In this document: piece after piece, positions 2,316 to 63,757 of the stretch
Numbering within the stretch: the stretch's first letter is position 1
How the letters are laid out: the number at the start of each line of letters is the position of its first letter
Assembly: GCF_021028975.2 (NCBI RefSeq)
Contig: NC_059429.1
Span: 95,728,001 to 95,792,000, forward strand
Length of the DNA: 64,000 nucleotides
Reading direction: 5' to 3'
Source: Sphaerodactylus townsendi
Taxonomy: Eukaryota
The notes under the pieces: model-generated
The model's database searches: none
Seen by the model: only the letters and a program-made list of their open reading frames with translations
Told to the model about the DNA's origin: nothing
Made by a program: the position numbers and the translations under genes

Positions 2316-3204
2316 CCTTGAAAGGCACTCTTCATTGAAGCTGCTGCTGGAGCACCACCTGTAGAGGGGCTTGCAGATGCTGGTACTGGGCAGGGGTCTG
2401 CTGCTGGGGCTGCCCCCCCCCTCCAGCTGTTGTTGCAACTGAGCAGCAGGCAAAATAGCCTGAGCTAACTTTGGGGTGAACTTGGGAGATGGGAGTGTTC
2501 TGGCCATGGACCTTTTGCGGGTGACTGACATGGAAAGTGCTTTTCCATTCACCTAGGTCCTAGGACCAATGAGATATTGAATGATCTTCTAATGGGTTTC
2601 TCTGCTTCACAGTCGAGGACTGACTTTGAAAAGGTGTAGGACAACTTGGAATAGGTGGTGCTACTGCTGAATTCAGCATGGCAGGTATTTGTACCTTGAC
2701 CTGTGCCAGGGGCTGGCAAGGGTTCCAGCTCTACCTGGAGCTCTTCATGGAGAAGTCTGCTGAGCATCTTTGGAGCTGACTTTTCACCTGGGAGTTTGTT
2801 TGGCAAGGCTTGGACAACGCTCCCGTCAGCAGAGGGTCATCTCATTGTCACCTCCATTCAAAGCTCTCTCCCATGGCTGAGTCACTGCCTGCCTCATCTG
2901 AAGTCCCCTCTAAACTGGATTTTTTAAATGAAGAAAACTGTTGCTTCTCACCCATTTTTTATGTACACACACATCACAAAGTCTCCTGAATTTGGGGGGG
3001 GGGGGATTCCAGAGAGTGTGCATGCTGCTACTGAGCTCTGCAGCAAAGGTGAATTATGCAGGTTACTTTGATTCCTCCCTGCCTTGGCAGGCTCAAAAAA
3101 AACCCCTACCCCCTCCTATCCCCACCCTCCTGGTCCATTGTCTTGAGGACACATGGATTTTTAAGTAAAAGCTTCTCATGCTAAATTGTGCAGAGGGGTC
3201 CTCC

Positions 3205-3596
3205 CAGAGGTGGGATCCAGCAGGTTCTCACAGGTTCCAGAGAGTAGGTTACTAATTATTTGTGTGTGCCAAGAGGGGGTTACTAATTGGTGATTTTGCC
3301 ACGTGATTTTTGCCTTAGTTACGCCCCTCCTCTCAGCAGTAGCGTGCAGAACTTGAAGCAGTCTAGCAGGAGGTGCACCGGCATGCATGGCAGCCTGCGC
3401 CTGCGTGCATGCGTTTCCCGCCCAAGTACCGGCGCAGCGGCTGCGTCCTTGCCACAGCCCCGCCCAGCAATGCCCCGCCCCCAGAATGCCTGGCCATGCC
3501 CCCATCGTGCCCCGCCCAGCCCCATTGGTGCTACATCACTGTTTGAATCCCACCACCATGGGAACCTGTTACTAAAATTTTTGGATCCCATCACTG
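3205..3596. mobile_element. Non-autonomous hAT MITE (CAGWGGTGGGATCC family)
   Basis: TIRs CAGAGGTGGGATCCA / TGGATCCCATCACTG; exact 8-bp TSD GGTCCTCC at 3197-3204 and 3597-3604; closely similar to 22987-23363. Confidence 0.92.
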
Positions 3597-5276
3597 GGTC
3601 CTCCTCCCTACCCCCACAGAATTTTCTGATCTACACCCACACCTCTCCAGTTATGGCAGGGAAAGGGATCCATTCATTCTTATCCCCCCCCCGCCGCCGC
3701 CGCTGCCGCCTACTGTTCCCCAAGCAAGAACTTGATCTGAGAGGAAAAGAAACGTTTAGAGAAGGAAGATATGTAATTATACTGAGAATTACAAAGCAAG
3801 AATCACCAACATGGAAGGGGGGGTGAGTGGGAAGCCGTGGACGGCAGTGTGAGGGAGAGGGAAGGCTGTCTGTGGTGGAGGGAAAATGTACAGTGCAAAG
3901 CTGTGCTCACTGGCAAATCCACCCAGTCTGGCAGTGAAGCAAATTAAAAAGTCGCACTAGAAGTGATCTCACTTGCCACCAAGAGAATGGAAAGTGAAAG
4001 CGTTGCTCCAGGAAATAAGACTGTACAAGAAATCTTGTTGTGACAGACATTCACCCCCACCATTTTGTGCATAATCAGCCTTTGAGTCTCTTTACAGGAG
4101 AGAAAGCGGGGGCATAAATCCAAATTCTTCTTCTTCACTGCCTCACCCCAGCCAGAAGTTGGGTTAGTAAAACGTGGCTGTGGAGCAAGTCTCCACACAG
4201 GTGGAGCAATCAGCAATTCCCAGGGTCCTACTAAACTCCTTTCTTGCCACTCATTTGCTCCTGGGCCAAACTCTGTCTAACTACTTCAGCAAAGATAGGT
4301 AACTACACTACAACCTACCAGACTCTCAAATTTTCTTATTTTCTTAAATCTCCTAGCTTCAATTGTTTTGATGGCCAGAGCAAGAACTAATAATTTTTTA
4401 CAATTAATCTATGATACAATTATTGTTTGACAAACAACCTGGCCTCTTTTTAATTGCCTGGCACTAGATTAATTAGGGAGGAACTAGCCCTATGATGAGA
4501 TTTATTTTGTGCTTTTTTACAATTCCTAATACACAGTTGTTATAAGTTGCCTGACAATAAATTATTTTACAACAGTTAAATTGCTCAAACCAACAGGAAA
4601 ACAAAAAAAAACTTTACTAACCAGTGTGTCTCACCCAAGAAATACAAATAAATAAACCAGTGTTCAGCAAGGAAAGATAAATTTCTTACAGGAGAACACC
4701 CCCAACTAACCCTCTAAAATTGGAGTACAAAAAAGGGGCAACAAAAAGAACAGACCCAAAGTCCCCAGTACCCCCCCCCAAGACAAAAGCAACAGAACAC
4801 AGCACAAGCCTCTTAACAAATCAAAACATCAGAAATCAAAGCCAATGTATAAATAATATGCAAAAGAACCAGGAAGTAAAGTAAGTAAACAAGGTCCCTC
4901 TCCCACCAAAGAAAGAAAAGAAAACTGCACACAACTGGAATGCCAAGGAAAAAATAAAACAGAGATGACTAGCTTTTAAACTAAACAAGCGAAGTCCCCA
5001 CATGCAAAGAGGCCTGAAAAAGTTGAAAAACATACCACAACAGAAATACAACACAACAGCAAGAGCCAACAGCAAAGAAACTGCAGGATGCCAAAGCCCT
5101 TAGGTAGGCCTTCCCCACCACCATCAATCCCCCAAAATCACACAGAAAAGAAAATTTGAAATATGTTCTCAAACCAGGTAATAGTCTTGCCCAGGCAGAC
5201 AGGCAAGCAGAGAAGTCTCCTTAAGATTCTGGAATCCTCTGGCAGCAGTGGCACATACTCCAGAAGTTTGTTCAAA

Positions 5277-19398: not shown

Positions 19399-20427
19399 CA
19401 GCACAATCCAGAGCTGGCAGGTAGGGATGGCTCCACTCTAGTGCTGCCCCACCCCCCCCCCCCCCCCGAGGGCTTTATCACAGTTTGGGAAACCCTAAAA
19501 AGTAAAAAAAGAAAGAAGGGAAAAATCCCCCATTGCCGGTAATAGAGATCCGCCATGAAAATTGTGGAGCATCTCTGCCAGTAACTTCACCAGTACAAGG
19601 GGTTGATTGGACTCTGGAGGCTGACTAAGGTCACACACCCCAGCCCACCTCCAGAATGCCACCGACCATGCCGGCACAGTGTTTCACGCAAGCGGGCCTG
19701 GATAACAGAGCCAGCTTCCATGCCAGGCACCATGGTAAGTTGCCCCTCCACCAGCACATTTGCCCCTTGTACCTGCAGAAAGGGCATGTGCAGGCTGGGC
19801 GGGGCAGCCAGGGCTAGTGTGCTGCCACAGCAACACGTAGTACTGAGGAGACTCAGAGCCGGTACTGGGCTGCTGACAGTGCAACAAGGAATACAGTCCA
19901 ACGATACCAAGTCCGTGGGAGAGTCCAGAGAGATGTCAGTGAGGCCAGGAGTCAAATGCCAGGAATGTATGCAGCAACAAGGAGAATCCAAGAATCAAGG
20001 TCAAGAAGCTGATCCACAGTCAGCCAGGGTCTGGAGACAGCAGTGTGTATAGGCAAGGTCAGGTAGAACATACTTTTATCCCTCAGAGCTATTTGCTTGG
20101 GACTGCTCCTGCAAAGACTCTGGGTAATGCCTAGCCTGCAGTCTTGCTGAGCGAGGCCTCTCCTTTAAAACCACTCTCAATCTTTTTCTGCAACGCTGAC
20201 TTACATCTGGAGACCCAGAGCTGCAGAATCTTCCTTAGCCCTGCTAATTAGCTCTGAGCCAGAAGCCTGTGCTGGTTCAGGCTCTGCTGATTCAGTTGGC
20301 ATCTCTCTGCGAGGCTCAGTTAACACTTCCTCGGATGAGCTGTCAGAGAGGCCATGACAGGGCATTTCCTCCAGCACAGGGGTGTGCTGGCTCCAGAGAG
20401 GGATCCCCCCTCCTCAGGATTGGGCTG
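19399..20427. mobile_element. TIR element (CAGCMCAATCC termini), probably with a nested insertion
   Basis: CAGCACAATCC / GGATTGGGCTG, flanked by TAA / TTA; much longer than the relative at 10610-11021. Confidence 0.45.
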
Positions 20428-20772
20428 TTAGATTCCTTTGCCACTATCATTTTGGTAAGGTTATTATAGTGATCATTATTTCTTCCTACACCTTAATGGA
20501 GCTTAATGGAGCTATGTCTTCAGTAAGTAAGACAGATCTCAGCGGCATGGTGATATATGAACCCATCATCCCACTGGCATATATAGCTACACTCCTATTA
20601 TGTTCATGTAGGTACCTCTTATTTTTCATGGTAGTTAATGTCACTGCACTTATTTGTGAATAAACTGGCACTTTGGTTCAGAATAAGAGGGGGGGGGTTG
20701 AATCAAAAGCAATCAAGGTACACCCATTCCCTTCCCAGGCTCTTCCACAGACCTTGGAATGTTACCTCAATC

Positions 20773-23363
20773 CAGAGGTGGGATGCAGCCGGTTCTCACC
20801 GGTTCGCGAGGGGGGGTTACTAAAAAATTTTGTGTGCGCGAGGGGGTTACACTGTCGGGTCCGCCAAATCACGAGAGAGCAGTTCTCACCGGCTCCCGAG
20901 GAGGGGTTACTAATCAGGTCCACAAAATGCCGAGAGGGGGTTACTAATCAGGTCTGCTCTGCAAAAAGAGACTTGCAGGCACTGTGCTTCCCATCCCGCC
21001 GGCGCCGCTACCAGCTTCTGTCAAAACTCCAGGAGGCGGAGGCGGAGCCATCCAGAGCACTCTGCTGAGGTGCGTGCTTTTGCCTGCTACCAAGCACCCG
21101 CTTGGCCGCTTCTCGCCGAAACTCCAGGAGGCAGAGCCATGATCCAAGCGCTCAGCACTGCAGTCACGCGGTGCTTTTGCCTGCCACCACCCACTTCCAT
21201 TCCCGCCAAAATTGCGCCACGCTGCACGCACCAGGGCGGCAGCGGCAGAGAAGCGGCAACTGCAGCATAAAGCTCACCCGAGGCACGGGGTGGGAAGAAG
21301 TGAAGGAGAGGGAGGAATTCCGGTGGACACTGGGCTCCAGGCGCTCACCCGGTAGCGCGACCCTGCAAGCCAGCGCTTCTGCAAGGCTTGGTGAGGAGAT
21401 CTCTCTCAATCTGGCAGGAGACGGCGGGGAACTGAGGCAAACGCACTTTATGTAAGCAAAGGTGGTTTTATTTGCTTCTATTCTGAAGCTGCACCAGGAG
21501 CTTAGACTGGAGCACTTGACTCTGTTCTGGATTGCACCTGTTGGTGTGGTAATCTTCTGTAGGGTTCAGACTCCCGCCCTCTTGTTTTCTGGAGCAGCTG
21601 CAGCAGAGGGGCTCGGGAAAGAGCCTGTATCCTTGCGCGCATGAGGAGACCTCCTAGGCAGCAAGCGGATCCGAGATAAGCCCCAAAAGAGATGGGACGC
21701 AGGCTTGCAGCTGGGAAGGTTGGAAGCAGTCGGAGCCTCAAGCAGAACCGTGGGTGGGGTGGCGGAGCGGAGGGAGGGAGGGCCTGGCTGGGAGGGGAGT
21801 CGGCTTTGGGTCGTCCCCCACCCCTGTTGTCAGAAGCCAGAACGCATGACCGAGAACACCGTCCGAGAAACCCTCTCCAAGTAATGGGTAAGCTGGCAGG
21901 AATCCCACAGAGCTCACTTTAACAGGCAGTGCAGCTGACGCATACCGAAGGCTCTCCCCCCCCCCCCCGAAAACTTCTGCTCCAGGACCTTCCTGCAAAA
22001 AAAAAAGTCACTTTGCTCATGGTGAAACGTTTCCGTTGGAATGTTTATTCTGCGGCTAGTGCAGTTTCAAAGGGTACTTGTATTTCCCACTTAGCACAGG
22101 AGTTTTCTGGTGACCTGGTCATCCAGCAATCACTTTGGGGGGAACCTGTTACCCCTGGTTGCAGCTTTTGTTGGAGTTGTGGCATTAGAACTAACAAAGC
22201 TGGAGCTTGTCCAAAATGGCTCACGGGTGCCGGGTCCTGAGATGCGATATAGCAAGGCTGAGGGGCAAGGTGGAGAGGCTGCCCTGAAAAAACCACCACC
22301 CCCCTAATTCCCACCATGGTTTGCCACCTCACAGACTGCTTGCAGGATCATTGGGCAAGAGCGAAAGTGCCAGGCAGCAACCTGGCTGCAAACAAGACAC
22401 CAGGTCAAGTTTTGCCCGTCTTAAGTTGGAGAATTATGAGGACGAGATGTTTTCAAGGATCAGCAGCTCGCTTGATTTGAGGGAGAATTCACCATTCCAG
22501 AAAGGCTGTAGCTAAGGTGGGACCATGGGTGCACTGCAGCCCCACCAAGGGCTCTCAATTCCCCCCGCCCCCCAGGCCCCATGTGCAACGTGATAGCTTC
22601 TCTCTTGTAGAAAATGTGTTAAAGGTAGAAAAGGCCTGTTTCTGTCCTTTGAATGTACATCCTATTCAACTCACTGACAACAGTTGGCTTGCACTGGAGA
22701 AGGATTCTTAGCTGGAGTTTGCTGCGTGTGTTTGTTAGTTTTTCTTTCATGTTCCGCTGGCTTTCCTCAGATCTCCGCTTCAGTTACTGTTACCTCCTGT
22801 TACACTTGTAACCTTTTCATTACAAGTGATCCGAGTTTCATTTACATTACTGTAAAACGTTTTGCGGAGATCGGATCTCCCCCGCTTCCCTCTCATTAAA
22901 GAGGAAGGGGTTTTATTCAAGTGAATCTGCTTATTGTGATTAGGGTTCTCAACTAACACTCAGCATCCAGAACAAAGAGTCCGTGCCAGAGGTGGGATCC
23001 AGCAGGTTCTCACAGGTTCCCGGGAGTAGGTTCCTCATTATTTGTGTGTGCCGAGAGGAGGGAGGTTACTAATTGGTGATTTTTGCCTTAGTTACGCCCC
23101 TCCTCTCAGCAGTAGCACGCAGAACTTGAAGCAGTCTAGCAGGAGGTGCATCAGCGTGCGTGGCAGCTTGCGCCTGCGTGTATACGTTTCCTGCCCAAGG
23201 ACCAGCGCAGCAGCTGTGTCCTTGCCACAGCCCCGCCCAGGAATACCCTGCCCAGGAATGCCTGGCCACGCCCACGTCATGCCCAGCCCCATTGGCGCTA
23301 TGCCACAGTTTGAATCTCACCACCATGGGAACCTGTTACTAAAATTTTTGGATCCCACCACTG
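20773..23363. mobile_element. Composite 2.6 kb non-autonomous hAT element with cargo
   Basis: Left TIR CAGAGGTGGGATGC at 20773, right TIR GGATCCCACCACTG ending 23363; exact 8-bp TSD CCTCAATC at 20765-20772 and 23364-23371. Confidence 0.88.
22987..23363. mobile_element. hAT MITE forming the right end of the composite element
   Basis: Starts CAGAGGTGGGATCCAGCAGGTTCTCACAGG; closely similar to 3205-3596 but lacks its own TSD (left flank GTCCGTGC). Confidence 0.9.
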
Positions 23364-24339
23364 CCTCAATCCCTTTGCCTTGTGTGTTTTAAGTGCCATT
23401 AGGTCACTTTTAATTCAAGTGAACTCATGCTGTCCTGCAAAGCAGCAGTCTGTTTCATCTCTATGATAACTGATCCATGTGCAAAAGTTCATGGTCATGC
23501 AATCATGGATTGTTGTTTGACAGAGTAATATTCTATCATGTATTATCACATTTATCTTTCAGTTGTTCATTTTCCTGAGCTGTTTCTCCTTCAGATGCTC
23601 TCTCTCTTTCATTCAAGAAACTGGTCTGTCATGTTTTTTTAAAGATCTCTTCAGTTCATGTTGCTAAATGAATTGAGTACAGATATGATGACCGCGCTCT
23701 TCTGTGGTCTCCAGGAAGTATAAATGGTGAGTTCCATCCGAAGCTTTGTGCGGGGGACAGAAAATTGTTTTGCAGCAGTGTCTTTATTCTTCCCACCCCA
23801 CAAATACTTTGGTTGGATCTCCAATAAATAAAATACAGCTTCAGAGAAACAATCTTAAAAGAAGCATGAGTCACTAGCTGTTATCAATGTGCCAAATACT
23901 AAACTATCACAGGCATCATCTATTTTACAGCAGAACAGGGCAGTAAAACGCTAAAAGATCACAAGAAGGAAAATGTTTCTTCTAGCAAAGATCAGTATTT
24001 CTCAGCTTTTCCCTGTACGTCAACAAAAAGTTCAAACTTTTGCCCCCAGTCTAATAGCTTTCCAGAATGGAAAACACAGTATGCAAGATTCTTTCAACAG
24101 CTGCACATACAGCAGAACAAAACAGAGGGTCAGTCATCCTGGAGATGAGGAAACTGTATAATTTGAAGCTGAGTAAAAACTTCAGTTGATGCAAAAATTA
24201 TGGCATTCTGAAGGGAAAGGAAAAACAACAAGGGATACCAGTTCAAGGTTGTGTGCTGTACGCCTGTGTGTGTAAATACATCCATAGAAATCAGTTCTGA
24301 TAAAATAAAAACATCAATATTTAGTACTCCAGCTAATCG

Positions 24340-27300
24340 GGCAAACTATTTTGGCTGGAAATCATGGAAGATCCAATCCCACAATTGCTGTACCTTTGCA
24401 AATCTTCAAAAATGAGCGGGGCTGTGGAGGGATTTAAAATGTAATTATTTTTCAGGAAACCTGGGTGCAAACACTGATAAATCTAGAGGGATTTAAAACA
24501 TATTCTTTACCAGCCTTTAAGATTAACTAATGGGGCTGCCTACAGGGTGGTTTATCTCTCCTTGCTTCCTCTAATCAAAATTTGCAATCAACTAATCTTC
24601 AGGATTGTTGCCGTAATGCCCAGGACATTAGGCTTGTTTTTTGAAATCTCTCCCTGTTCTCAGAGAATGTTTACATGCCACTTTATTTGTATAGATTGTG
24701 TTTACTTGTGTACTGGAATCATCTGATAGCATTCATGGAAGAGCTGGAATAAAAATGTCCCCCATATAGAAATAGTATTGGCAGGGGATTATAAGGCAAG
24801 AGGGGGTAATCATATTTCATCTCTTATTAGGAGGGCAGGAATTGATCAGGATGCTTTATGAATGTTATTCTCTTCATCTTTGAGATGATCAAAGGATACT
24901 TCTCTGAACCCTGCTGGCACTAGTTGGGCCAGGTTCTGCTTACAATTTAACAAACTTTAGCTAAATGGTATACTACACGTTGGATTAATATTCTTTTGTT
25001 TCAACCAAAGGTTGCAGTGTGATTGACCATGTTTTGATCTCTCCCTCTGTATGGGGTTTCCTTATCCATTTCTCAGGGGGATCAAATTATTACTGACCAC
25101 CTTCCTCTAATATTCAAGAGCAATATGAACTTTAATTCTGTACTAACTCAGAGTCATAAACAAAGAATTTTATGGTCTATGGGTCTAACACAAATAACCA
25201 AATAACTTGTTGGATTTATAACCAGTTTAAATATAGATCCTCTGTAATCAGCTAAAAAACCCCTCTTACAAGTAATAGAAATCCATGAAAACATAATAAC
25301 ACATATTATTGACATTCTTAAGCAAGACCTCGAAGCTGGGACTAAAAGGAGAGGGCATAATAGTGACTGGTTTGACAGTGAATGTAAAGATCTAAAAAGC
25401 TATATTCATGCTACTTATTGTCATTATCATAAATCTAAGGCCATAGCCATTTCAGATAATTTTTTGGTCTTAAAAATCAGCTACAACAATTTACTAAAGA
25501 AAAAAGTAATGCATTTATAAACCAAAAATGGGAACAAGTTTTTCATGTTGCATTGTCAAATAATCCAAAGCATTTCTTGGCTATAGTAACTGGAACCCTT
25601 CGCACTGATGTCCCCTCTATGGCAAGTCTTTCTCCTTATATGAGGTTGCAACACTTCAAATTTATTTTACAAGGAGGTGATGCATGAAACAGACTATTTA
25701 AATCTCCCTGTTGGCAACCTACCAGAATGGTCACCTGTAATATCTGCTGAAATAATAAAACTAATTGGTCAACTTAAAATGGGGAAAGTGCCATGATCAG
25801 ATGTATTGACTCCTGAAATTTTAAAAGTAAATCCAGACTGGTTGGCACCCCTGCTCACTGCTCTTTTTATAATGATAAATAAGACCGGCATAATGCCAGA
25901 GGCCTGGACAAATGCAGTAATGGTGCCTATTTACAAAAAGGGAAATCATATCAGCCCTGTCGATTTTAGACCAATCAGCCTTCTTTCTTAATAGGGAAGC
26001 TGTACCCTAAATATCTATTGTCAAAACTAACTTTTTGGATATTGTAGCACAGGATAGTAGTCCCAGAACAAGTGGGTTTTTGCCGGGGAAAAACTACTCT
26101 GAATCATTGTAGGATGTTATCTCACCTGGCTAATAAATATACCAGAAGAAGCAAGTCAAATTTGTATGCAGCTTTTTTGGATTTTAAAGGAACTTTCAGT
26201 TCCATCCCCAGGGATCTTCCATGGAATAAATTAACAAAAATGAACATAGATAAGAGATTATCAAAAAGTTGCATGCCTGCACAAGTTGTCAAATCAAATG
26301 CTCCATGGCAGGAAAGTTGACTCAAAAGATTCCTGCCAACAAAGGAGTAAAGCAGGGATGTGTTCTGGTGCCTTCTTTGTTTAATTTGTTTCTAAATGAT
26401 TTTGCTCCATGGAAGGCTGTGGAAGTGAGTCCTGTCCTGTAATGGGGGGGGCGGGGGGCGGGGGGGTCATTGTCAGGACATTCCATCCAGTGGTGAGATC
26501 CGAATACTTTAACAACTGATTCTGCCTTGCCCCCCCTGAGTTTTCCATGCCCCCCGAGCTCCCCCCAGGCAGCCACCCTTCCCCACTTTCTCATGCTGCC
26601 CCCCTCACCTCCATCTATGGGTGGAAAGAACAGCTGAAGCCAGCCAGGCAGCACTGGTGTGGGCAGAGCAGAGGGCTCCGGCTCAGCTCTCCTCCCAGCT
26701 GTAGGCTCCCAAGGCAGAGAGGAGAGCTGAGCCGGGCAGTGCTGGTGGGGTGTGTGTGTGTGGAGCAGAGGGCTCTGGCTTTGGAGGAGAGCCAAGCTGG
26801 AACCCTCTGCTACACCCCCACCCCCCAGAGATTCCTGGTTCGGCAAGTCTCCTTCCTGCCCCGGGTAGCCAGGGCATGGAGGAGAACCGAGCTGGAGGCT
26901 TCTCTACATATACACACCAGGGGAGGGGGAATGAGGGGTTTTTTAACAACTGGTTCGCCCGAACCGGGGCAAACCAGCTGAATCCCACCACTGATTCCAT
27001 CCCTTAGACAATTATGTCTAAGGATACTCTCAGAATCTAACCTTTCCAACTGGTTAGCCTCAATCAAAGAAAAAAATAATCCCTTAGTTTATCCATTAAT
27101 TTATTATTTATTCTTTCAGCATATGAGGCTTACAAGATTATAAAATGTTGACTTTTGGAGACTGAAGCACAAAATCTTAATCTTGCAGCCACTAAGACCT
27201 GTTCTCCTCTGGGATTGGGGATCCCATTTAAAGTATGTCAAAATTCTGCATATTTTTACCATCTCCAGAATCTGATTCAATGTAAAAACTTTTTCTTTGG

Positions 27301-32182: not shown

Positions 32183-32318
32183 CAATGGTAAGATTCAAAT
32201 AATTTAACAACCGGTTCCGGTGGTGGGATTCAGATAATTTAATAACTTGTTGTTTACAAGAACCATTTTAACAACCGGTTCTGCTGAAGTGGTGCGAACC
32301 TGCTGAATCCCACCACTG
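32183..32318. mobile_element. 136-bp hAT MITE
   Basis: CAATGGTAAGATTC / GAATCCCACCACTG; exact TSD GGCACAAC at 32175-32182 and 32319-32326; internal repeat of the left end. Confidence 0.88.
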
Positions 32319-35430: not shown

Positions 35431-37570
35431 CCTGCAAGTAACTTGTCCACATGCTCTTAAATCTCAAAAGCTGAAATTGATCCAAACAAACAGGACCAGA
35501 CAGTGCTCCGGACAACTCCACAAGACACTGTTCAACAGAGGAATCCAATCCTGTGCCGACCTAAGTTATTTTATCCTTAAACTGCACAACAAAATCATCA
35601 TAGCTCCTCCTATAGATAACAGATCTTGCTCTTCCTATTGATGCTGGAACTGGTTCCCATAGGAGCTGTGACCTCTGATTGTATGTCAGTGGTCCTCTAA
35701 CCCATCTCTGTTTTAAAAAGGGAATATTCTTTTATTGCATCCAAAAGGTAAACACACATTTCTGATCCTTTAAAACTCCACGCTTTATTAAACTGGGACC
35801 CTTCAATAATGGATTAAAATAAAAAAAATTTCTTGGATTAAAAAAAAGCAGGACTGTCAGATGGGGAAAAACCTTTCAGCCAAAAAACTCACGATAAAGA
35901 TAATCAGTGTTGTGTTAACAAACTCTCAGTCCTGCATTGATCTAGGCCCAAAATCTCTCACTAGTACTCAGAGGAAATCATATTCCACCTTAAGAAAAAA
36001 ATTTCCCCTTTCTTGTCTAGATTTTTTTTGAAGTCTACTTTCCTCAGTCAGATTTGCTGTAGGAAATAACCTCAGAGAGGTTCTGATTTAGCAACATAAA
36101 CATACCTAAAGGTTTATGTGACTGGCTAAATAGCAGGAGGAATAATGTGTGCTGATTGCTCAGTTTCAATCACTGCAGTTTTATGAGAGATTTTGCTCCA
36201 AAATGTCCACATTCCTCTCAAGGGAATGATCGTGGCTCAGATAGCAGAAACCTAAAGAGGCACCAACATCCCAAAAGATAACATTGATCTCACAATCCAT
36301 CATCAGAAGATGCCAACAATAGCCAATCTTTCCCATGTTTTTTTTTTCTCCACAACAGTCTTTGTGGGTTGATTCCAAGTGACAGAGAACCTATGGGTTC
36401 TACATGAAAGAAGGCAAAAACACCCTTTTCCACACAAGCCCCAGCTCTACTGTTGAAAGAGGCAGGGGGATGATTTTGCCCCTTCCTTCAATACTGAGTA
36501 CTCACACTCAGAATATCCTGATCTTGGTTCTGATGAGTGATCTATTAAGATAAGATTGATAGGGTGATGTGACAGATACCAGATAGAAACAACTAACTTG
36601 AATTTTAACATTAAAGAAACTAGGCAGATTTTTTAAAAAAAATTATAAATGATCCAAATCCAATTCTTATTTTGACCACTTCTAATTTTCAGGCAACTGC
36701 AACTGAGTAAGCTAGTAGTCTCCCAATGGCTTCTCCACAGACCTGTTCTGAGAATCCCACATGGACAACCAGCTGTAATGCTATGCAAATATGCCACTCT
36801 GCAGGGAAAAGTTACAACACAATTCTTTGGAATCAAATGGTTTTTTCAGACTAGGCCTCCAAGAAAGCAAACAAAAAAATCATTTGATCAAAAATGACCT
36901 TTAAAAAAGTCATACTTGCAATTTTTAAATATTTTTAACTTGCCAATACTATAATTAAGTTTCCAGCATTGCTTATTAGCAAAGGGCAGGGGGAGGATTA
37001 GTCATTGGACTTGGTAGCATGAGTCCGTACGTTATATTTCAAACCATCCTCCTCAAGCCCACACTGCCATCCAAATAATGTTGTAATTACAATCCTATAT
37101 GGATAGTAGAGTGCATTCGTTCTCCCTGCCCTTCCCCAGCCTCCAACTGCAATAAAAATCAATTTTGAAGATGCTCTTTCATTGTGTTCTTCAATATACT
37201 TCACCTGAATTTGGAACAAATTCACTTAACTTTCTCTACTGCAAGGTGAGATTTTTTTCCCTTTCCTAGCAAGTTTGTCAGAGTTTTTTCTTTCCTAGCA
37301 AGTTTGTCAGAGTTTGATGGAAATACACCCATATATTTACGCAATGCCAAGGTTGTAGCAGATTCTCTTTGATCTTACTTAGGCACAAAGAAAGAATGTT
37401 CAGTGCCTTAACAGCTGAAGCACATTAGAGCAGCATTGCAAGATAGATTCATGTGCCTCTTCTTATGAGAAACACACTGCAATCCTTGAAGAGCAGAGTT
37501 GATTCATGTAGTGTGTCAGTGCTTCTAGCAAGGTGGGCTGAGTGAGGAAAGAACAGGAGAGAGAATAGAT

Positions 37571-37762
37571 CAGAGGTGGGATCCAACCAGTTCTCACCAC
37601 TTCTCTAGAAGTGTTTACTAATTTTTTCTGAGTGCCGAGAAGGGGTTACTAAAGCAACCTCCCTGCCCAATAGGGACTGGAGGTGCGTGTGTGCGGCGGT
37701 GCCACTGTTTCAATCCCACCACCATCAGAACCTGTTATTAAATTTTTTGGATCCCACCACTG
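37571..37762. mobile_element. 192-bp hAT MITE
   Basis: CAGAGGTGGGATCCAA / TTGGATCCCACCACTG; exact TSD GAATAGAT at 37563-37570 and 37763-37770. Confidence 0.92.
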
Positions 37763-38274
37763 GAATAGATCCTGCAGTAAAAAGAATTACAGATGCACTC
37801 CCCTGCCCCAACCGGAAAAATTTAGTATCACAGCCATTATGGCAGTGTAACTAAACAATATTTGGATGGCACAAGGGAAGCTGCAGGGATTCAGGGAATA
37901 GGTGGAAGTTGTTCACCACAACAACTTTGTCCCGTATCCTCTTGCTGGATTATTTTGTTAGGGAGGCTAAAATGCCCTCTTCTAGCCAGCCCTTTTCTGG
38001 TGTCCCAGTCTATACATTGTTTAGGCAAAACTTACAGGGGAGCTTTATGAATAGTCTTAGAACAAATTTGTTTACACTGATATTTGATCACAGAATTGAG
38101 TCAAGTCCAAATGCATCTTAAATCCCAGCAAGGTTTCCAAGGTATAAACTTTCAAGAGTCAAAACTCCCTTCATCTGATATCTGAAAAGGGAGCTTTTCT
38201 TCGACTGTCAAAAGCTTATAGTCTGGAAATCTTGTTGATCTTTCAAGTTCAGAAGCACCTTAATATTGTATATT

Positions 38275-39420
38275 CAATTCTGCTCTATGCAGATGACGCT
38301 GTCCTTCTCTCTCGATCCAGAGTTGGCCTCAGACGCTTAATGAAGCGCTGTGTGGATTACTGTGAATCCAACAGACTGACAATTAATTATGAAAAAACCA
38401 AGGTATTGGTTTTCTCTAAGCGCTTTAAGAAGCTCACATGGGCAATGAAAAGCACCCAAATTGAACAGGTTAAGTGCTATAAATACCTTGGCCTCTTATT
38501 CTCCTTTAACCTTTCATGGGCAACCCAGAGGAAGGCTGCTCTCCTAGCTACATCTAACAGTATGTCAGCATTACTACGTTTCTTTTACAGCAGTGGCCGC
38601 TCCTTTATCCCTCCTGCCCTCAAATTTTTCAATGCCAAAGTCGCCTCGAGATTGCTTTACGGAGTCCCAATCTGGATTCAAGCTATTAACCACTCCTTGA
38701 ATTCTCTTCAATCCAAATTTTTTCACAACATAACTGGACTCACAAATTGCGTGCCCTATGCAGCTCTTTGTCTGGAGTTAGGTCAAAACTCCTTGGAATC
38801 AGCCGCTTGGCTGAGGACTTTTAGATTCTGGCTGCGAATTCACTTTCTCTCAGACTGTAATTCCCTGGTCCACTGTCTGCTCTCTGACACCCATTCCAAC
38901 CCCTGGTTTTCCATAATTGAAGAAAAAATGGCCTCTATTGGACTGTCAGTGGATTCACTTTGCCCTTTGTCCTATTCAGAAGCTTACAGGAAATTAAAAG
39001 ATCAACTATTGGATAGAGAGTTCTCTACCCTAATCACCACAGCCAAGAAAACATGCTCCCCCCTGTATTTTTCTCTCCCATTTGAACGGGGCCACTTGGC
39101 TCAATACCTGTACTGCTTAATAAACCCTGTTCAAAGGAGAGCCATAATGCTCGCCAGGTTTAATGTTATGCCTTCTGCCTTGTTACATGGCAGATTTAAT
39201 AAGCAAGAAAAGGCTAAAAGATTGTGTCCATGTAACGATGGCTCAGTTGAATCTCTGGCCCACCAATTACTACACTGTCGCAGATTCAAGGAAATCAGAT
39301 CCAAGTATGTGAATCTTACTCCTTTACATTTACCCCATCTCCCCGATTTAATTAGATTACACTACTTGTTGGACAACCCTGATCCTTCACTCTGTATGAT
39401 AGTGGCAGACTTTCTCCTGG
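38275..39420 (+). mobile_element. 5'-truncated non-LTR retrotransposon ORF2 (RT C-half + CCHC zinc knuckle, RTE-X-like)
   Basis: Within ORF 38232-39470: LLYADDAVLL, INYEKTKVL, YKYLG, RLCPCNDGSVESLAHQLLHC; stop-free. Confidence 0.9.
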
Positions 39421-39640
39421 AAAACCCTAGCATGATTTTTCAGGATTTTTGGAGGATGCTTGAAATATAAGCCCCACTCCAAAAATAAGCCCTAGTAACA
39501 GATTCCCCGGCGCTACTGATCTGGACATGTGGGGCACACAAATCATGGGAAAAAAATAAGACATCCCCTGAAAATAAGCCCTAACGCATCTTTTGGAGCA
39601 AAAGTTAATAAAACCCTGTCTTATTTTCAGGGAAACAGGG
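39421..39640. mobile_element. Tc1/mariner-pogo (Tc2-like) MITE fragment
   Basis: Repeated AAAATAAGCCCTA / AAAATAAGAC motifs and terminus GTCTTATTTTCAGGGAAACAGGG; other end missing. Confidence 0.55.
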
Positions 39641-60499: not shown

Positions 60500-62385
60500 T
60501 TGCCCTTTCAAGAGCCAAGCGGTCAACTTTAAATGTCCCAGTTCGGGGTGCCAAATGGGACCTTGACGTAGCAGGTCTGGTCTGCATGGGAGATGCAGGG
60601 GTTCCTGCTGGCAAGAGACGCATCTACAAAAGCGATCGTGGAAAACCCACGGTCTCCTGGAGCCAATGGGAAGTTATACAAAATCCAGATCGTTCCGGCT
60701 CCAACCTCCAGCCTGCAGTAACAATTTTTTGCGGAATGGGTCCCAGGAGGAGCAGCTTAAGAGAACGCTCCTTCCAATACGCACGGAGCCACTAGGGCAT
60801 CCGTTGCTATCGCTGATTGATGGTAATACCAGGTGAAGAATCTCGGCAACTGGGCATTCTCAGGTGAGGCGAACAAGTCCACCTGCGGCCTGGGAAACCG
60901 TGTGGCTAAGCTCTCAAATACCGCCGGATGAAGTTGCCACTCGGCATTCGAGATCGCCTTTCGACTTAACCAGTCCGCCTTGGTATTCAGGATGCCACTG
61001 ATGTGCTCTGCCCAAATGGACGCTAAATGATTCTCCGCCCACATCAACAATTTGGCTGCTTCTATTTGGAGAACTGATGATCTGCTTCCTCCTTGATTGT
61101 TTAAGTACGCCTTTGCGGCTACATTGTCCATCCTTATTAGCACGTGACAACCCCAGAAGCTCGGACTGAAATGATGCAGAGACAGGTGGATTGCATGCAG
61201 CTCCAACAGGTTGATGGGCAGTTTTGAGTCTGGCCTGGACCACTGACCCTGGACGAACCGGTGATCCATTGTCGCTCCCCATCCGGAGAGACTTGCATCT
61301 GTGAAAACTTGAACTGTAGACCTTACTAAGTATAGTTTCCCTTTGGACAGGTTGCTGCTGTCCATCCACCAGACCAGGCTCCTTTTGACTGATGAAGGCA
61401 CCACTAGCCATCTGTCCTTCTTCTGCATTATATCTAGTTGGTATGGGCAAAGAAATAGCTGTAGCTGCCTGGAGTGAAATCTGGCCCACTGCAGTGCGTC
61501 TATAGTCGCTACTAATAAACCCATCAAACTGGACAGCTGCATCAGGGATGACTTGTTGGCTACGATCACCTGTTGAACTAGCCGTTGTATCTTCAGAATC
61601 TTGTCCTGTGGCAGGAAAAGACAATGCCGCAGGGTATCGATCACTACTCCCAGATGCTCCATTCGCTGTGATGGAACCATGGTACTTTTCTTGAGATTGA
61701 CCACAAAGCCGTACTTTTGCAATGTCTGCTGCACTTGTTGGACATCTGACCTTGCCTTTTCCTCTGACTCGGACCGTATCAGCAAGTCGTCCAGGTAAGG
61801 GTGGACATGTATTCCCTGGTGGCGTAACTGGACTACCGGCACCAGGAGCAGTTTTGAGAACACCCTCAGAGCCGAAGCAAGGCCAAAGGGTAAAGCTCTG
61901 TATTGGAGATGCATATCTTCTACTGCGAACCGGAGGAATTTCCGATGAGATGGATGGATGGGTACATGCAAGTAAGCCTCCGTCAGGTCTAGGGACGTGA
62001 GGAACTCCTTCCTGTAGCGAAGCCGTAATCGTTCGCAATGTTTCCATTTTGAAATGATGTAGTCGTAGAAAACAGTTCACAAATCGCAGGTTCAGAATTG
62101 CTCTCCAGTCCCCTGATCGTTTGGGAACTGTGAAAAAATGGGAATAGATGCCTGTGCGCTTCTCCTAGTCTGGCACAAATTCCACAGCTTTGATTTGTAG
62201 GAGGTCGTCTATTGCTTGTTCTGGATTGTTTTTGAGGGCACTTGAGAGTTAAAGATGGGAAGAATCTGTGTGAGGGAAACTGCAAATTCTATTAAGTAAC
62301 CGTACTTTACCGCTTCTTTTGATCATCGATCTACATGTGGTTGATCCCCATAATGATGAAAATGCAGTAATCTCCGCCCCCCCCC
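60500..62385 (-). pseudogene. DIRS RT / RNase H / DNA adenine methyltransferase-like ORF, frameshifted
   Basis: FFTVPKRSGDWRAILNL, LDLTEAYLHVPIH, LPFGLAS, YLDDLL, FTDASLSGWGA, INLLEL, DNVAA, NTKADWLSR, VDLFASPEN, LTAWLL. Confidence 0.93.
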
Positions 62386-62407: not shown

Positions 62408-63757
62408 TTAGAACCGAGAGTTTCTAGAGAATCTGGGGAATCTACCCGCTCTACCGAAGGGGCGAAAATTTCCCCTTCCTCTGGGTGCCTGCTGCGAATA
62501 CCAATTTGCACGTCTACCATCCTTGTTAATGCGGGGAAGTATCCCTTGCGAACGAAAAGGTAAGCGAGAGGCTGCCCTATCTTGTCTAACCTGCCTCGGA
62601 AGAATCTTCCTGTTATCCTTGGTATTGACTAATGCCTGCCCCAAGCCCTTTCCAAACAATTTTTGACCATGGAAAGCATAGCTGGAAACCACTGATTTTG
62701 ACTGCATGTCTGCTTGCCAAGCTCTCAACCATAAGTTTCGCCTAGCCGGTATAGAACTGGCCGTGGAACGGGGTGCTAATGTGATGGCATCCGCTGATGC
62801 ATCAGCCAAGAAGGTTGACCCTAACATGAGTCTGTCCAGTCCATCTCTCACTGCCCTGTCATCTGGGGCAACTAAATCTACAATGTGTTTAATCCAAACC
62901 AACAACGCCCTGGAAACAGTGGCTGTAGGTATTAGGACCTTAATTAACATGCCCAACCAATCATGAGCTTTCTTCATCGCTACTTCAGACTTCCTGTCTA
63001 GGGGATCTCTAATATATCCCTCACCATACTTAGAAACTAAATTGCCTTATTGCGAATTTGCCACCGGTGCATCAACAATCGGAGTCTGTAACAGGTCATG
63101 AACATAAGCGGACATGGAGTAAAATCACTTGCTAGACGGAGGAACTGTCTTACTAGCAGTGGGATTAATCCACTCCTTTTTAATCCACTTCTCATAAGAT
63201 TCAGGCAACGGAAAAAATTTTAATGGATTTTCCTCCTCTGGGAAATAGCTCTGGTTTCCCTTCGGGCATCCCTTAATTGGCTTCCCCTGAGCCTGTCCTG
63301 TAGGGTCCTCAGCATCAGCCGGATCGGTAAGATCCAAAGCAGAAATGGTTTTTGTAATGAGAAGTGACAAATCCTCTGCTTTGAAAAATCTAGGCCCTTG
63401 CGCTGCCTCCTCTGGACCCGCGTCCTCTGTATCAGAGAACTGTGCCTCATCCTCCAGGCACTCTCCTTCACTTAAATATTCCTCTTGAAAAGGAGCGGAA
63501 TTTGTTAGGTGGTCTCCATCCCTGGCCATGTCTAACGCCCCTGCAATCTGACTGGCAGAACTGCCTTGGGCTTGTTGCCTAACCTGTCCTCCCTCTGGGA
63601 CAGCAAAACTAGTTTGAGGAGGTCTTGAAAATTCCTGTCTAAAGGACTGGGTCAGAAATTGCGTGAACTGAAAAGGGGAGATGCTGCTCCAAGCAGAAGT
63701 ATCCTCAGAAAACAGAAGGAGGTTGAGTGCAGAGGGCTGGTCTACCCGCTCACTCAC
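62408..63757 (-). pseudogene. DIRS gag-like ORF, interrupted
   Basis: ORFs 63125-63757 and 62408-62977 joined by PIVDAPV..RDPLDRKSE; FLADAS..ARRNLWLRAW..FHGQKLFG. Confidence 0.85.

Follow-up and report, generated by a model that had tools for sequence, protein, structure and literature searches.

Among squamates, the non-autonomous hobo-type hAT transposons of the anole Anolis carolinensis have been described by Novick et al. (PMC3014272) as capturing extraneous DNA at a high rate, with other transposons serving as filler, and as giving rise to composites by inter-element recombination. In maize, Ds elements carrying filler DNA are known, together with the compound elements Ds-l4-483 and Ds2/Ds-l4 (Du et al., PMC3260210), the order in Ds-l4-483 being a complete element, then extraneous DNA, and finally a truncated second copy that supplies a terminus. 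Ac/Ds macrotransposons and alternative transposition have also been reported in maize (cited in PMC3260210; PMC4270019). In parallel, 208 hAT-associated Pack-TIRs have been counted in 100 animal genomes (Tan et al. 2021, PMC8277862); no more than four of the Pack-TIRs existed in multiple copies, with a tendency to GC-rich DNA, and both end-bypass and template-switch models have been discussed for their origin in the same work.

Here, we describe a compound unit of this general kind in a gecko, at positions 20773-23363 of the window, by which we mean the whole 64-kb stretch of DNA that was analysed. The unit is 2591 bp long and is bounded by hAT-type ends with an 8-bp duplication on either side (Table 1). 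The evidence supports a compound structure, made of a left end from a diverged subfamily, approximately 2 kb of non-transposase DNA (the cargo or filler), and a complete MITE that gives the whole its sole right terminus.

Table 1. Features of the compound unit and of the related MITE copies in the window.
Feature	Positions	Strand	Basis
Left duplication (TSD) copy, CCTCAATC	20765-20772		Read directly; identical to 23364-23371; one copy at the empty site
Outer left end, terminal inverted repeat CAGAGGTGGGATGC plus 3-4 subterminal repeat units	20773-20956	+	Repeat families D1-D3, motif positions
Cargo/filler, ~2.0 kb, non-coding	20957-22986	+	Composition, null domain searches, multi-copy contigs
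GTCCGTGC, 8 bp immediately 5' of the inner MITE	22979-22986		Read directly
Inner MITE, complete, 377 bp, same orientation as the outer left end	22987-23363	+	Alignment with 3205-3596, termini
Terminal inverted repeat at the right (CAGTGGTGGGATCC in minus-strand reading), sole right-type terminus of the unit	23350-23363	-	Census and alignment
Right duplication (TSD) copy, CCTCAATC	23364-23371		Read directly; one copy at the empty site
Independent full-length MITE copy	3205-3596	+	Own duplication GGTCCTCC at 3197-3204 and 3597-3604
Short (192-bp) relative of the MITE	37571-37762	+	Duplication GAATAGAT at 37563-37570 and 37763-37770

The unit starts with CAGAGGTGGGATGC and finishes with ...GGATCCCACCACTG, and its terminal inverted repeats, of 14 bases, agree at 12 of the 14 positions when CAGAGGTGGGATGC on the left is compared with the minus-strand reading of the right end. 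A census of this 14-base terminus over the 64-kb window, allowing up to two mismatches, returned 10 sites vs. 0.44 expected, and within the unit it found left-type termini at 20773 and 22987 (the latter CAGAGGTGGGATCC) and a single right-type terminus. A decayed terminus was also sought in the cargo by local alignment of the 60-nt left and right ends on both strands, and the scores stayed in the range of shuffled queries. The census and this alignment together uphold the statement of the first-pass annotation that the unit has two left-type termini and only one right terminus. The consensus of hAT terminal inverted repeats starts with YARNG (CAGAG or CAGTG). Given that the hAT hallmarks are present in the unit, namely an 8-bp duplication and short inverted termini beginning with CAG, we classify it as a non-autonomous member of the hAT superfamily, whose elements are mobilised by a transposase with a hAT dimerisation domain. 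No hAT transposase ORF was found in the unit or in the rest of the 64-kb window, and therefore all copies in the window are non-autonomous.

The 8-bp duplication CCTCAATC around the 2591 bp, which had been claimed to be single and exact, is read directly at both edges of the unit. Identical 8-mers at the spacing of the unit occur in only 3 of 61393 position pairs over the whole window, a chance of approximately 5 in 100,000, and therefore this duplication is not a chance match. We also aligned public contigs of four runs, X1, X2, and X3 (organisms A and B) and X5 (organism C), to positions 20300-23800. The site is empty in organism C, where one contig of 2313 nt (X5 record 25), at a depth of 37.6 that equals the single-copy level of X5, covers 20300-20764 and 23364-23800 and joins 20764 to 23364, with exactly one copy of CCTCAATC and with the record positions 1813 and 1812 adjacent. 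The flanks of this empty site differ from the window by 22 substitutions in approximately 900 bp, or about 2.4%. The site is filled in X1, X2, and X3, whose flanks show 0-1 differences from the window; in X1, record 2 extends 64 nt past the left junction, and the X2 and X3 contigs enter the element by 24-29 nt on either side, which is below the alignment minimum of 31 letters. The orthologous empty site with one CCTCAATC, which the first-pass annotation had asked to be looked for, thus exists in organism C, and its proposal that the unit moved as one piece holds. All 2591 bp were inserted by one transposition at the CCTCAATC target, given that the organism C site is empty and has a single CCTCAATC, and the insertion took place after the lineage had split from that of organism C or was still segregating at that time. 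The opposite view, a coincidental 8-bp match around DNA that was always in place, is contradicted by the exactly one CCTCAATC of organism C and by the rarity of such 8-mer matches, and it can be practically dismissed. A precise loss of the unit in organism C is also unlikely, because hAT excision normally leaves footprints.

The outer left end belongs to a subfamily that has diverged from the MITE, with 79% identity to the left end of the inner MITE over the first 66 nt and no alignment thereafter. Its 3-4 subterminal units have the form GTTCTCAC...GGTTACTAA, and of the 10 occurrences of the motif GTTACTAA over the window, 9 fall within elements of this family. The number of these subterminal units, of approximately 55-60 bp each, varies among the paralogs, with some paralogous contigs having one unit fewer and others one more; the joints that these contigs show in the outer left end lead from 20836 to 20896, from 20834 to 20928, and from 20936 to 20882, thus skipping 59 or 93 bp or going back by 55 bp. 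Another joint, from 20948 to 23076, was considered as a sign of MITEs bearing an outer-type left end, and this was rejected: its left side is only 19-21 letters long and these letters are the GGTTACTAAT motif, with ordinary MITE contigs fitting 20939-20948 better than the mutated inner copy.

The inner MITE aligns from its first to its last base with the independent copy at 3205-3596, at 85% identity, and it has no duplication of its own, being preceded by GTCCGTGC and followed by CCTCAATC; a partner copy of GTCCGTGC was not found in the unit. Both of these features, a nested MITE without a duplication and the same MITE standing independently with its own GGTCCTCC, had been annotated before, and both are read in the sequence. 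The contig depth over 22991-23341 amounts to 4 to 14 million in X2, X3, and X5, approximately 100,000 times the single-copy level, and if depth reflects copy number, the MITE family makes up several percent of the genomes of the three organisms. Compared with most MITE contigs, the inner copy has a 15-bp deletion at 23076, where the 3205 copy keeps the bases, and 4 extra bases at 23059-23061, and it is a derived member of the MITE family. The MITE family is older and far larger than the cargo family.

The duplications GGTCCTCC, GAATAGAT, and ATTCCATC, all of 8 bp, flank three other elements of the window with related ends. The one with ATTCCATC, exact at 26480-26487 and 26994-27001, is a 506-bp element (26488-26993) of a different hAT-like MITE family, with the ends CAGTGGTGAGATCC and GAATCCCACCACTG and the subterminal motif TTAACAAC(T/C)GGTTC. 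A right end of this same 26488-type family, CAGTGGTGGGATTC on the minus strand, lies at 32305-32318, and approximately 85 nt upstream of it the sequence CCGGTGGTGGGATTC resembles a degenerate left terminus and is accompanied by repeats of the motif TTAACAACCGGTTC; the region 32200-32318 is possibly a very short or rearranged copy of the family. The four elements whose ends were checked (the compound unit and those at 3205, 26488, and 37571) all have the same orientation. Retroelement remnants are also present in the window, namely a 412-aa ORF with a reverse-transcriptase domain (38232-39470, plus strand) and a 404-aa ORF with reverse-transcriptase and RNase H domains (60757-61971, minus strand). 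Directly upstream of the latter, in its own reading direction, there is a 189-aa ORF (62408-62977, minus strand) with a weak LAP2alpha match (PF11560, E 7.7e-6, just above the cut-off), which is probably part of the same retroelement.

The cargo has a GC content of 0.54 and a CpG observed/expected ratio (o/e) of 0.49, compared with 0.42 and 0.23 in the whole window and with a CpG o/e of 0.16 in the flanks. These values bear out the earlier description of the cargo as far richer in GC and CpG than its surroundings, with the reservations that the MITE copies are equally CpG-rich (o/e 0.47 and 0.51), the segment 21970-22670 is at or near the background, and only 20973-21470 and 21573-21870 are CpG-island-like (o/e 0.6-0.8). 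Because the MITE has an equal CpG content, the CpG argument for a capture of host DNA is weak, and the CpG richness would suit a young GC-rich repeat as well as a captured promoter. The compound copy, when compared with the family majority, has A or T in place of G or C more commonly than the reverse, as would be expected from CpG decay. Regarding its coding content, the longest ORF overlapping the unit has 131 aa, and none of the ten ORFs tested (76-131 aa) gave a Pfam match with E up to 1, which agrees with the previous observation of no recognisable transposase ORF in the intervening DNA. Searches of 20000-24000 gave no Rfam family with E up to 1, and the tRNA scan was negative. Ten cargo ORFs were absent from a collection of 15 billion proteins in an exact look-up, a weak sign of absence given that such a look-up is sensitive to the choice of start codon. 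The self-comparison of the unit gave no second cargo copy in the 64-kb window. Taking together Pfam on the ten ORFs, Rfam, the tRNA scan, the self-comparison within the window, and the contigs, neither a gene fragment nor a donor locus of the cargo was found.

In the three related organisms, the cargo is a multi-copy family sequence. Almost the whole of 20951-22979 is represented in X2, X3, and X5 by contigs of 95-98% identity, and cargo paralogs are present in all three organisms, including organism C with its empty site, where X5 records 26-31 cover almost the whole length. Given that organism C lacks the insertion and still has cargo contigs, the cargo must therefore sit elsewhere in the organism C genome, and since the cargo contigs overlap, it is contiguous in those copies. 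The depth of the cargo contigs is 3-11 times that of the single-copy flanks in X1, X2, X3, and X5, contig depth being only a rough guide to copy number: 350-2000 vs. 57-74 in X2, 160-1030 vs. 31 in X3, 70-560 vs. 37.6 in X5, and 35-230 vs. 5-10 in X1, where a hole at 21821-22288 proves nothing. Exact identity with the window is shown by the flank contigs and by none of the cargo contigs listed; the listed cargo contigs have mostly 2-5% substitutions plus small indels, and up to approximately 10% over short stretches, with, for instance, 5 differences in 222 nt in X2 record 11, 18 in 441 nt in X2 record 15, and 36 in 982 nt in X3 record 22. A divergence of 2-5% would exceed what is expected of an immediate source copy. 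The depth of the left third of the cargo (21002-21352) exceeds that of its right half by a factor of 2-3, and this unevenness points to structural variants, as in a pre-existing heterogeneous family. In addition, X1 record 3, at a depth of 22 vs. 5-10, has the left end minus one 59-bp unit, crosses 20950, and reaches 21046 with 4 differences; therefore, one or more paralogous forms share the junction of this left end with this cargo. The filler occurs in multiple copies and predates the insertion, and a left end of the same type precedes it in one paralogous contig or more. At the other side, the cargo contigs end at 22973-22979, where the assembly graph meets the hyperabundant MITE, and none of them spans 22986/22987.

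How did the unit arise? We favour, with a probability of roughly 0.55, a MITE nested in a longer non-autonomous hAT element, followed by an alternative choice of ends in which the outer left end was matched with the MITE's right terminus. The MITE would first have entered a longer element of the family, or the DNA beside its remains, by an ordinary transposition event, and this integration by transposition would be the reason why it is complete to its first base; GTCCGTGC would then be the orphaned left duplication of that original integration. A hAT transposase acting in trans would have paired the outer left end with the MITE right end, bypassing the right end of the longer element itself, so that the product would be a shortened derivative with the terminus of the MITE on the right, and the old right duplication, with the DNA beyond it, would have stayed at the donor site. 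Because the unit retains two left ends, the same transposase could later excise either the whole unit or the inner MITE alone. We prefer this nested-MITE route because the MITE is whole from base 1 and the right end of the unit is the exact end of the MITE followed by a fresh duplication, and a completeness from base 1 to base 377 fits a transposase rather than a random template switch; the cargo without further termini is also in its favour. The filler is taken as the body of the element and not as host DNA because it is multi-copy and heterogeneous, deeper in its left part, and already attached to the left end, as X1 record 3 attests. On the other side of the balance, the paralog contigs stop short of the MITE junction, none of the contigs shows a precursor in which GTCCGTGC stands at either side of the MITE, the listed cargo contigs are more divergent than expected of an immediate source, and the window holds no autonomous hAT transposase. 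Exactly the same anatomy, with a pair of left termini, a sole right one, a single duplication, and an intact MITE, would be left by macrotransposition or end bypass, in which a truncated element reduced to a solo left end and an unrelated resident MITE, approximately 2 kb apart and in the same orientation, were mobilised together with the intervening host DNA, and the composite then multiplied to a few copies. CpG-island-like values are found in part of the cargo, the multi-copy Pack-TIRs of animals tend to GC-rich DNA and have an end-bypass model (PMC8277862), and Ac/Ds macrotransposons are known in maize (PMC3260210). However, the cargo is multi-copy in three organisms with an uneven depth along its length, a paralog already has the same left end on it, no donor locus, gene fragment, or Pfam match was found, its CpG is not above that of the MITE, and the incomplete left partner departs from the classic two-element macrotransposon. 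Therefore, the earlier suggestion of host DNA carried off in Pack or macrotransposon fashion finds no support in this multi-copy family sequence, for which no gene fragment or donor was found, and we regard such an origin as doubtful.

Had a chimera formed through gap repair or template switching, following the excision of an element or at a stalled replication fork, the left end, an ectopic filler, and then the MITE would have been copied one after another, and the composite would have been built in place before transposing. This is the usual account of filler DNA in hAT and other TIR elements (PMC3260210, PMC8277862), and the variable number of subterminal units among the copies indicates replication or repair slippage; nevertheless, the switch would have to land exactly on base 1 of the 377-bp MITE, which is improbable for a random breakpoint, and we consider it unlikely that the whole unit was made in this way, while template switching may still explain the joining of the filler to the left end. 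The reverse derivation, also put forward in the first-pass annotation, has the short MITE born from the right end of the longer element, and it draws on the right 377 bp that both share. It fails on the depths, which in all runs are approximately 100,000 times single-copy for the MITE vs. 3-11 times for the cargo, on the private indels that set the inner copy apart from the bulk of its family, and on the complete inner left end, which stands nearer to the remaining MITEs, at 85%, than it does to its outer counterpart, at 79% over 66 nt; we reject it as very improbable. The nested-MITE route thus remains our preferred reading.

Whatever the route, the locus offers a vertebrate example for which the filled site and its empty counterpart are both documented, and in which a hAT transposase took mismatched ends, from subfamilies approximately 21% apart at the left terminus, and recently moved 2.6 kb as one. 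This is direct evidence for the remodelling of long non-autonomous hATs in squamates and evidence of recent DNA-transposon activity in the gecko lineage. Through the unit, its surroundings have also gained a CpG-rich block measuring 0.5-0.9 kb, and extra ends in direct orientation are a cause of alternative transposition and chromosome breaks in maize. A bolder generalisation, which we think improbable, is that the abundant MITE acts as a portable right end, mobilising the kilobases in between wherever it lands downstream of a compatible left end; if true, the gecko would have a recently active vertebrate macrotransposition or Pack-hAT system, with CpG-island-like and possibly promoter-active DNA being spread through genes.

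Compared with the systems described at the beginning, the gecko unit resembles the Pack-TIRs, or Pack-hATs, in having hAT ends around GC-rich, non-transposon-looking DNA and in being multi-copy, as only four of the surveyed Pack-TIRs were; Pack-TIRs, in contrast, by definition contain host gene sequence whose parent can be identified, and none was found for the gecko cargo with Pfam on the ten ORFs, Rfam, the tRNA scan, and the exact look-up, although a non-coding first exon or a promoter may be its source. With the Ac/Ds macrotransposons it shares the pairing of direct-orientation termini of two elements with movement of the intervening DNA. The macrotransposon features of one duplication around the whole composite and an empty site are found in the gecko; two directly oriented complete elements, one at either end, are not, since the right partner is complete but 20773-22986 has no right-type terminus. 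The classic Ac/Ds macrotransposons consist of two complete elements with unique host DNA, whereas the left partner of the gecko unit is a left end only and its intervening DNA is a repeated family sequence. The likeness to the maize Ds-l4-483 lies in the complete small hAT on one side, the foreign middle, and the partial element giving the other terminus, although in mirror image, given that the complete element stands on the right in the gecko unit and not in Ds-l4-483. Moreover, three copies of the duplication accompany the maize element, and these point to its having formed in place (PMC3260210), while in the gecko the duplication is lacking from the inner MITE and the unit as a whole has demonstrably transposed. 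The anole hATs are alike in coming from a squamate, in their kilobases of non-coding filler, in their variable structure within a family, and in their composites of different elements (PMC3014272). The gecko unit differs in owing one terminus to a complete, separately mobile MITE of a sister subfamily, a feature not met among the passages of PMC3014272 retrieved by a term search, the two being likened by description. In summary, the gecko unit cleanly exemplifies a type of event that is already known and is not a new type of element.
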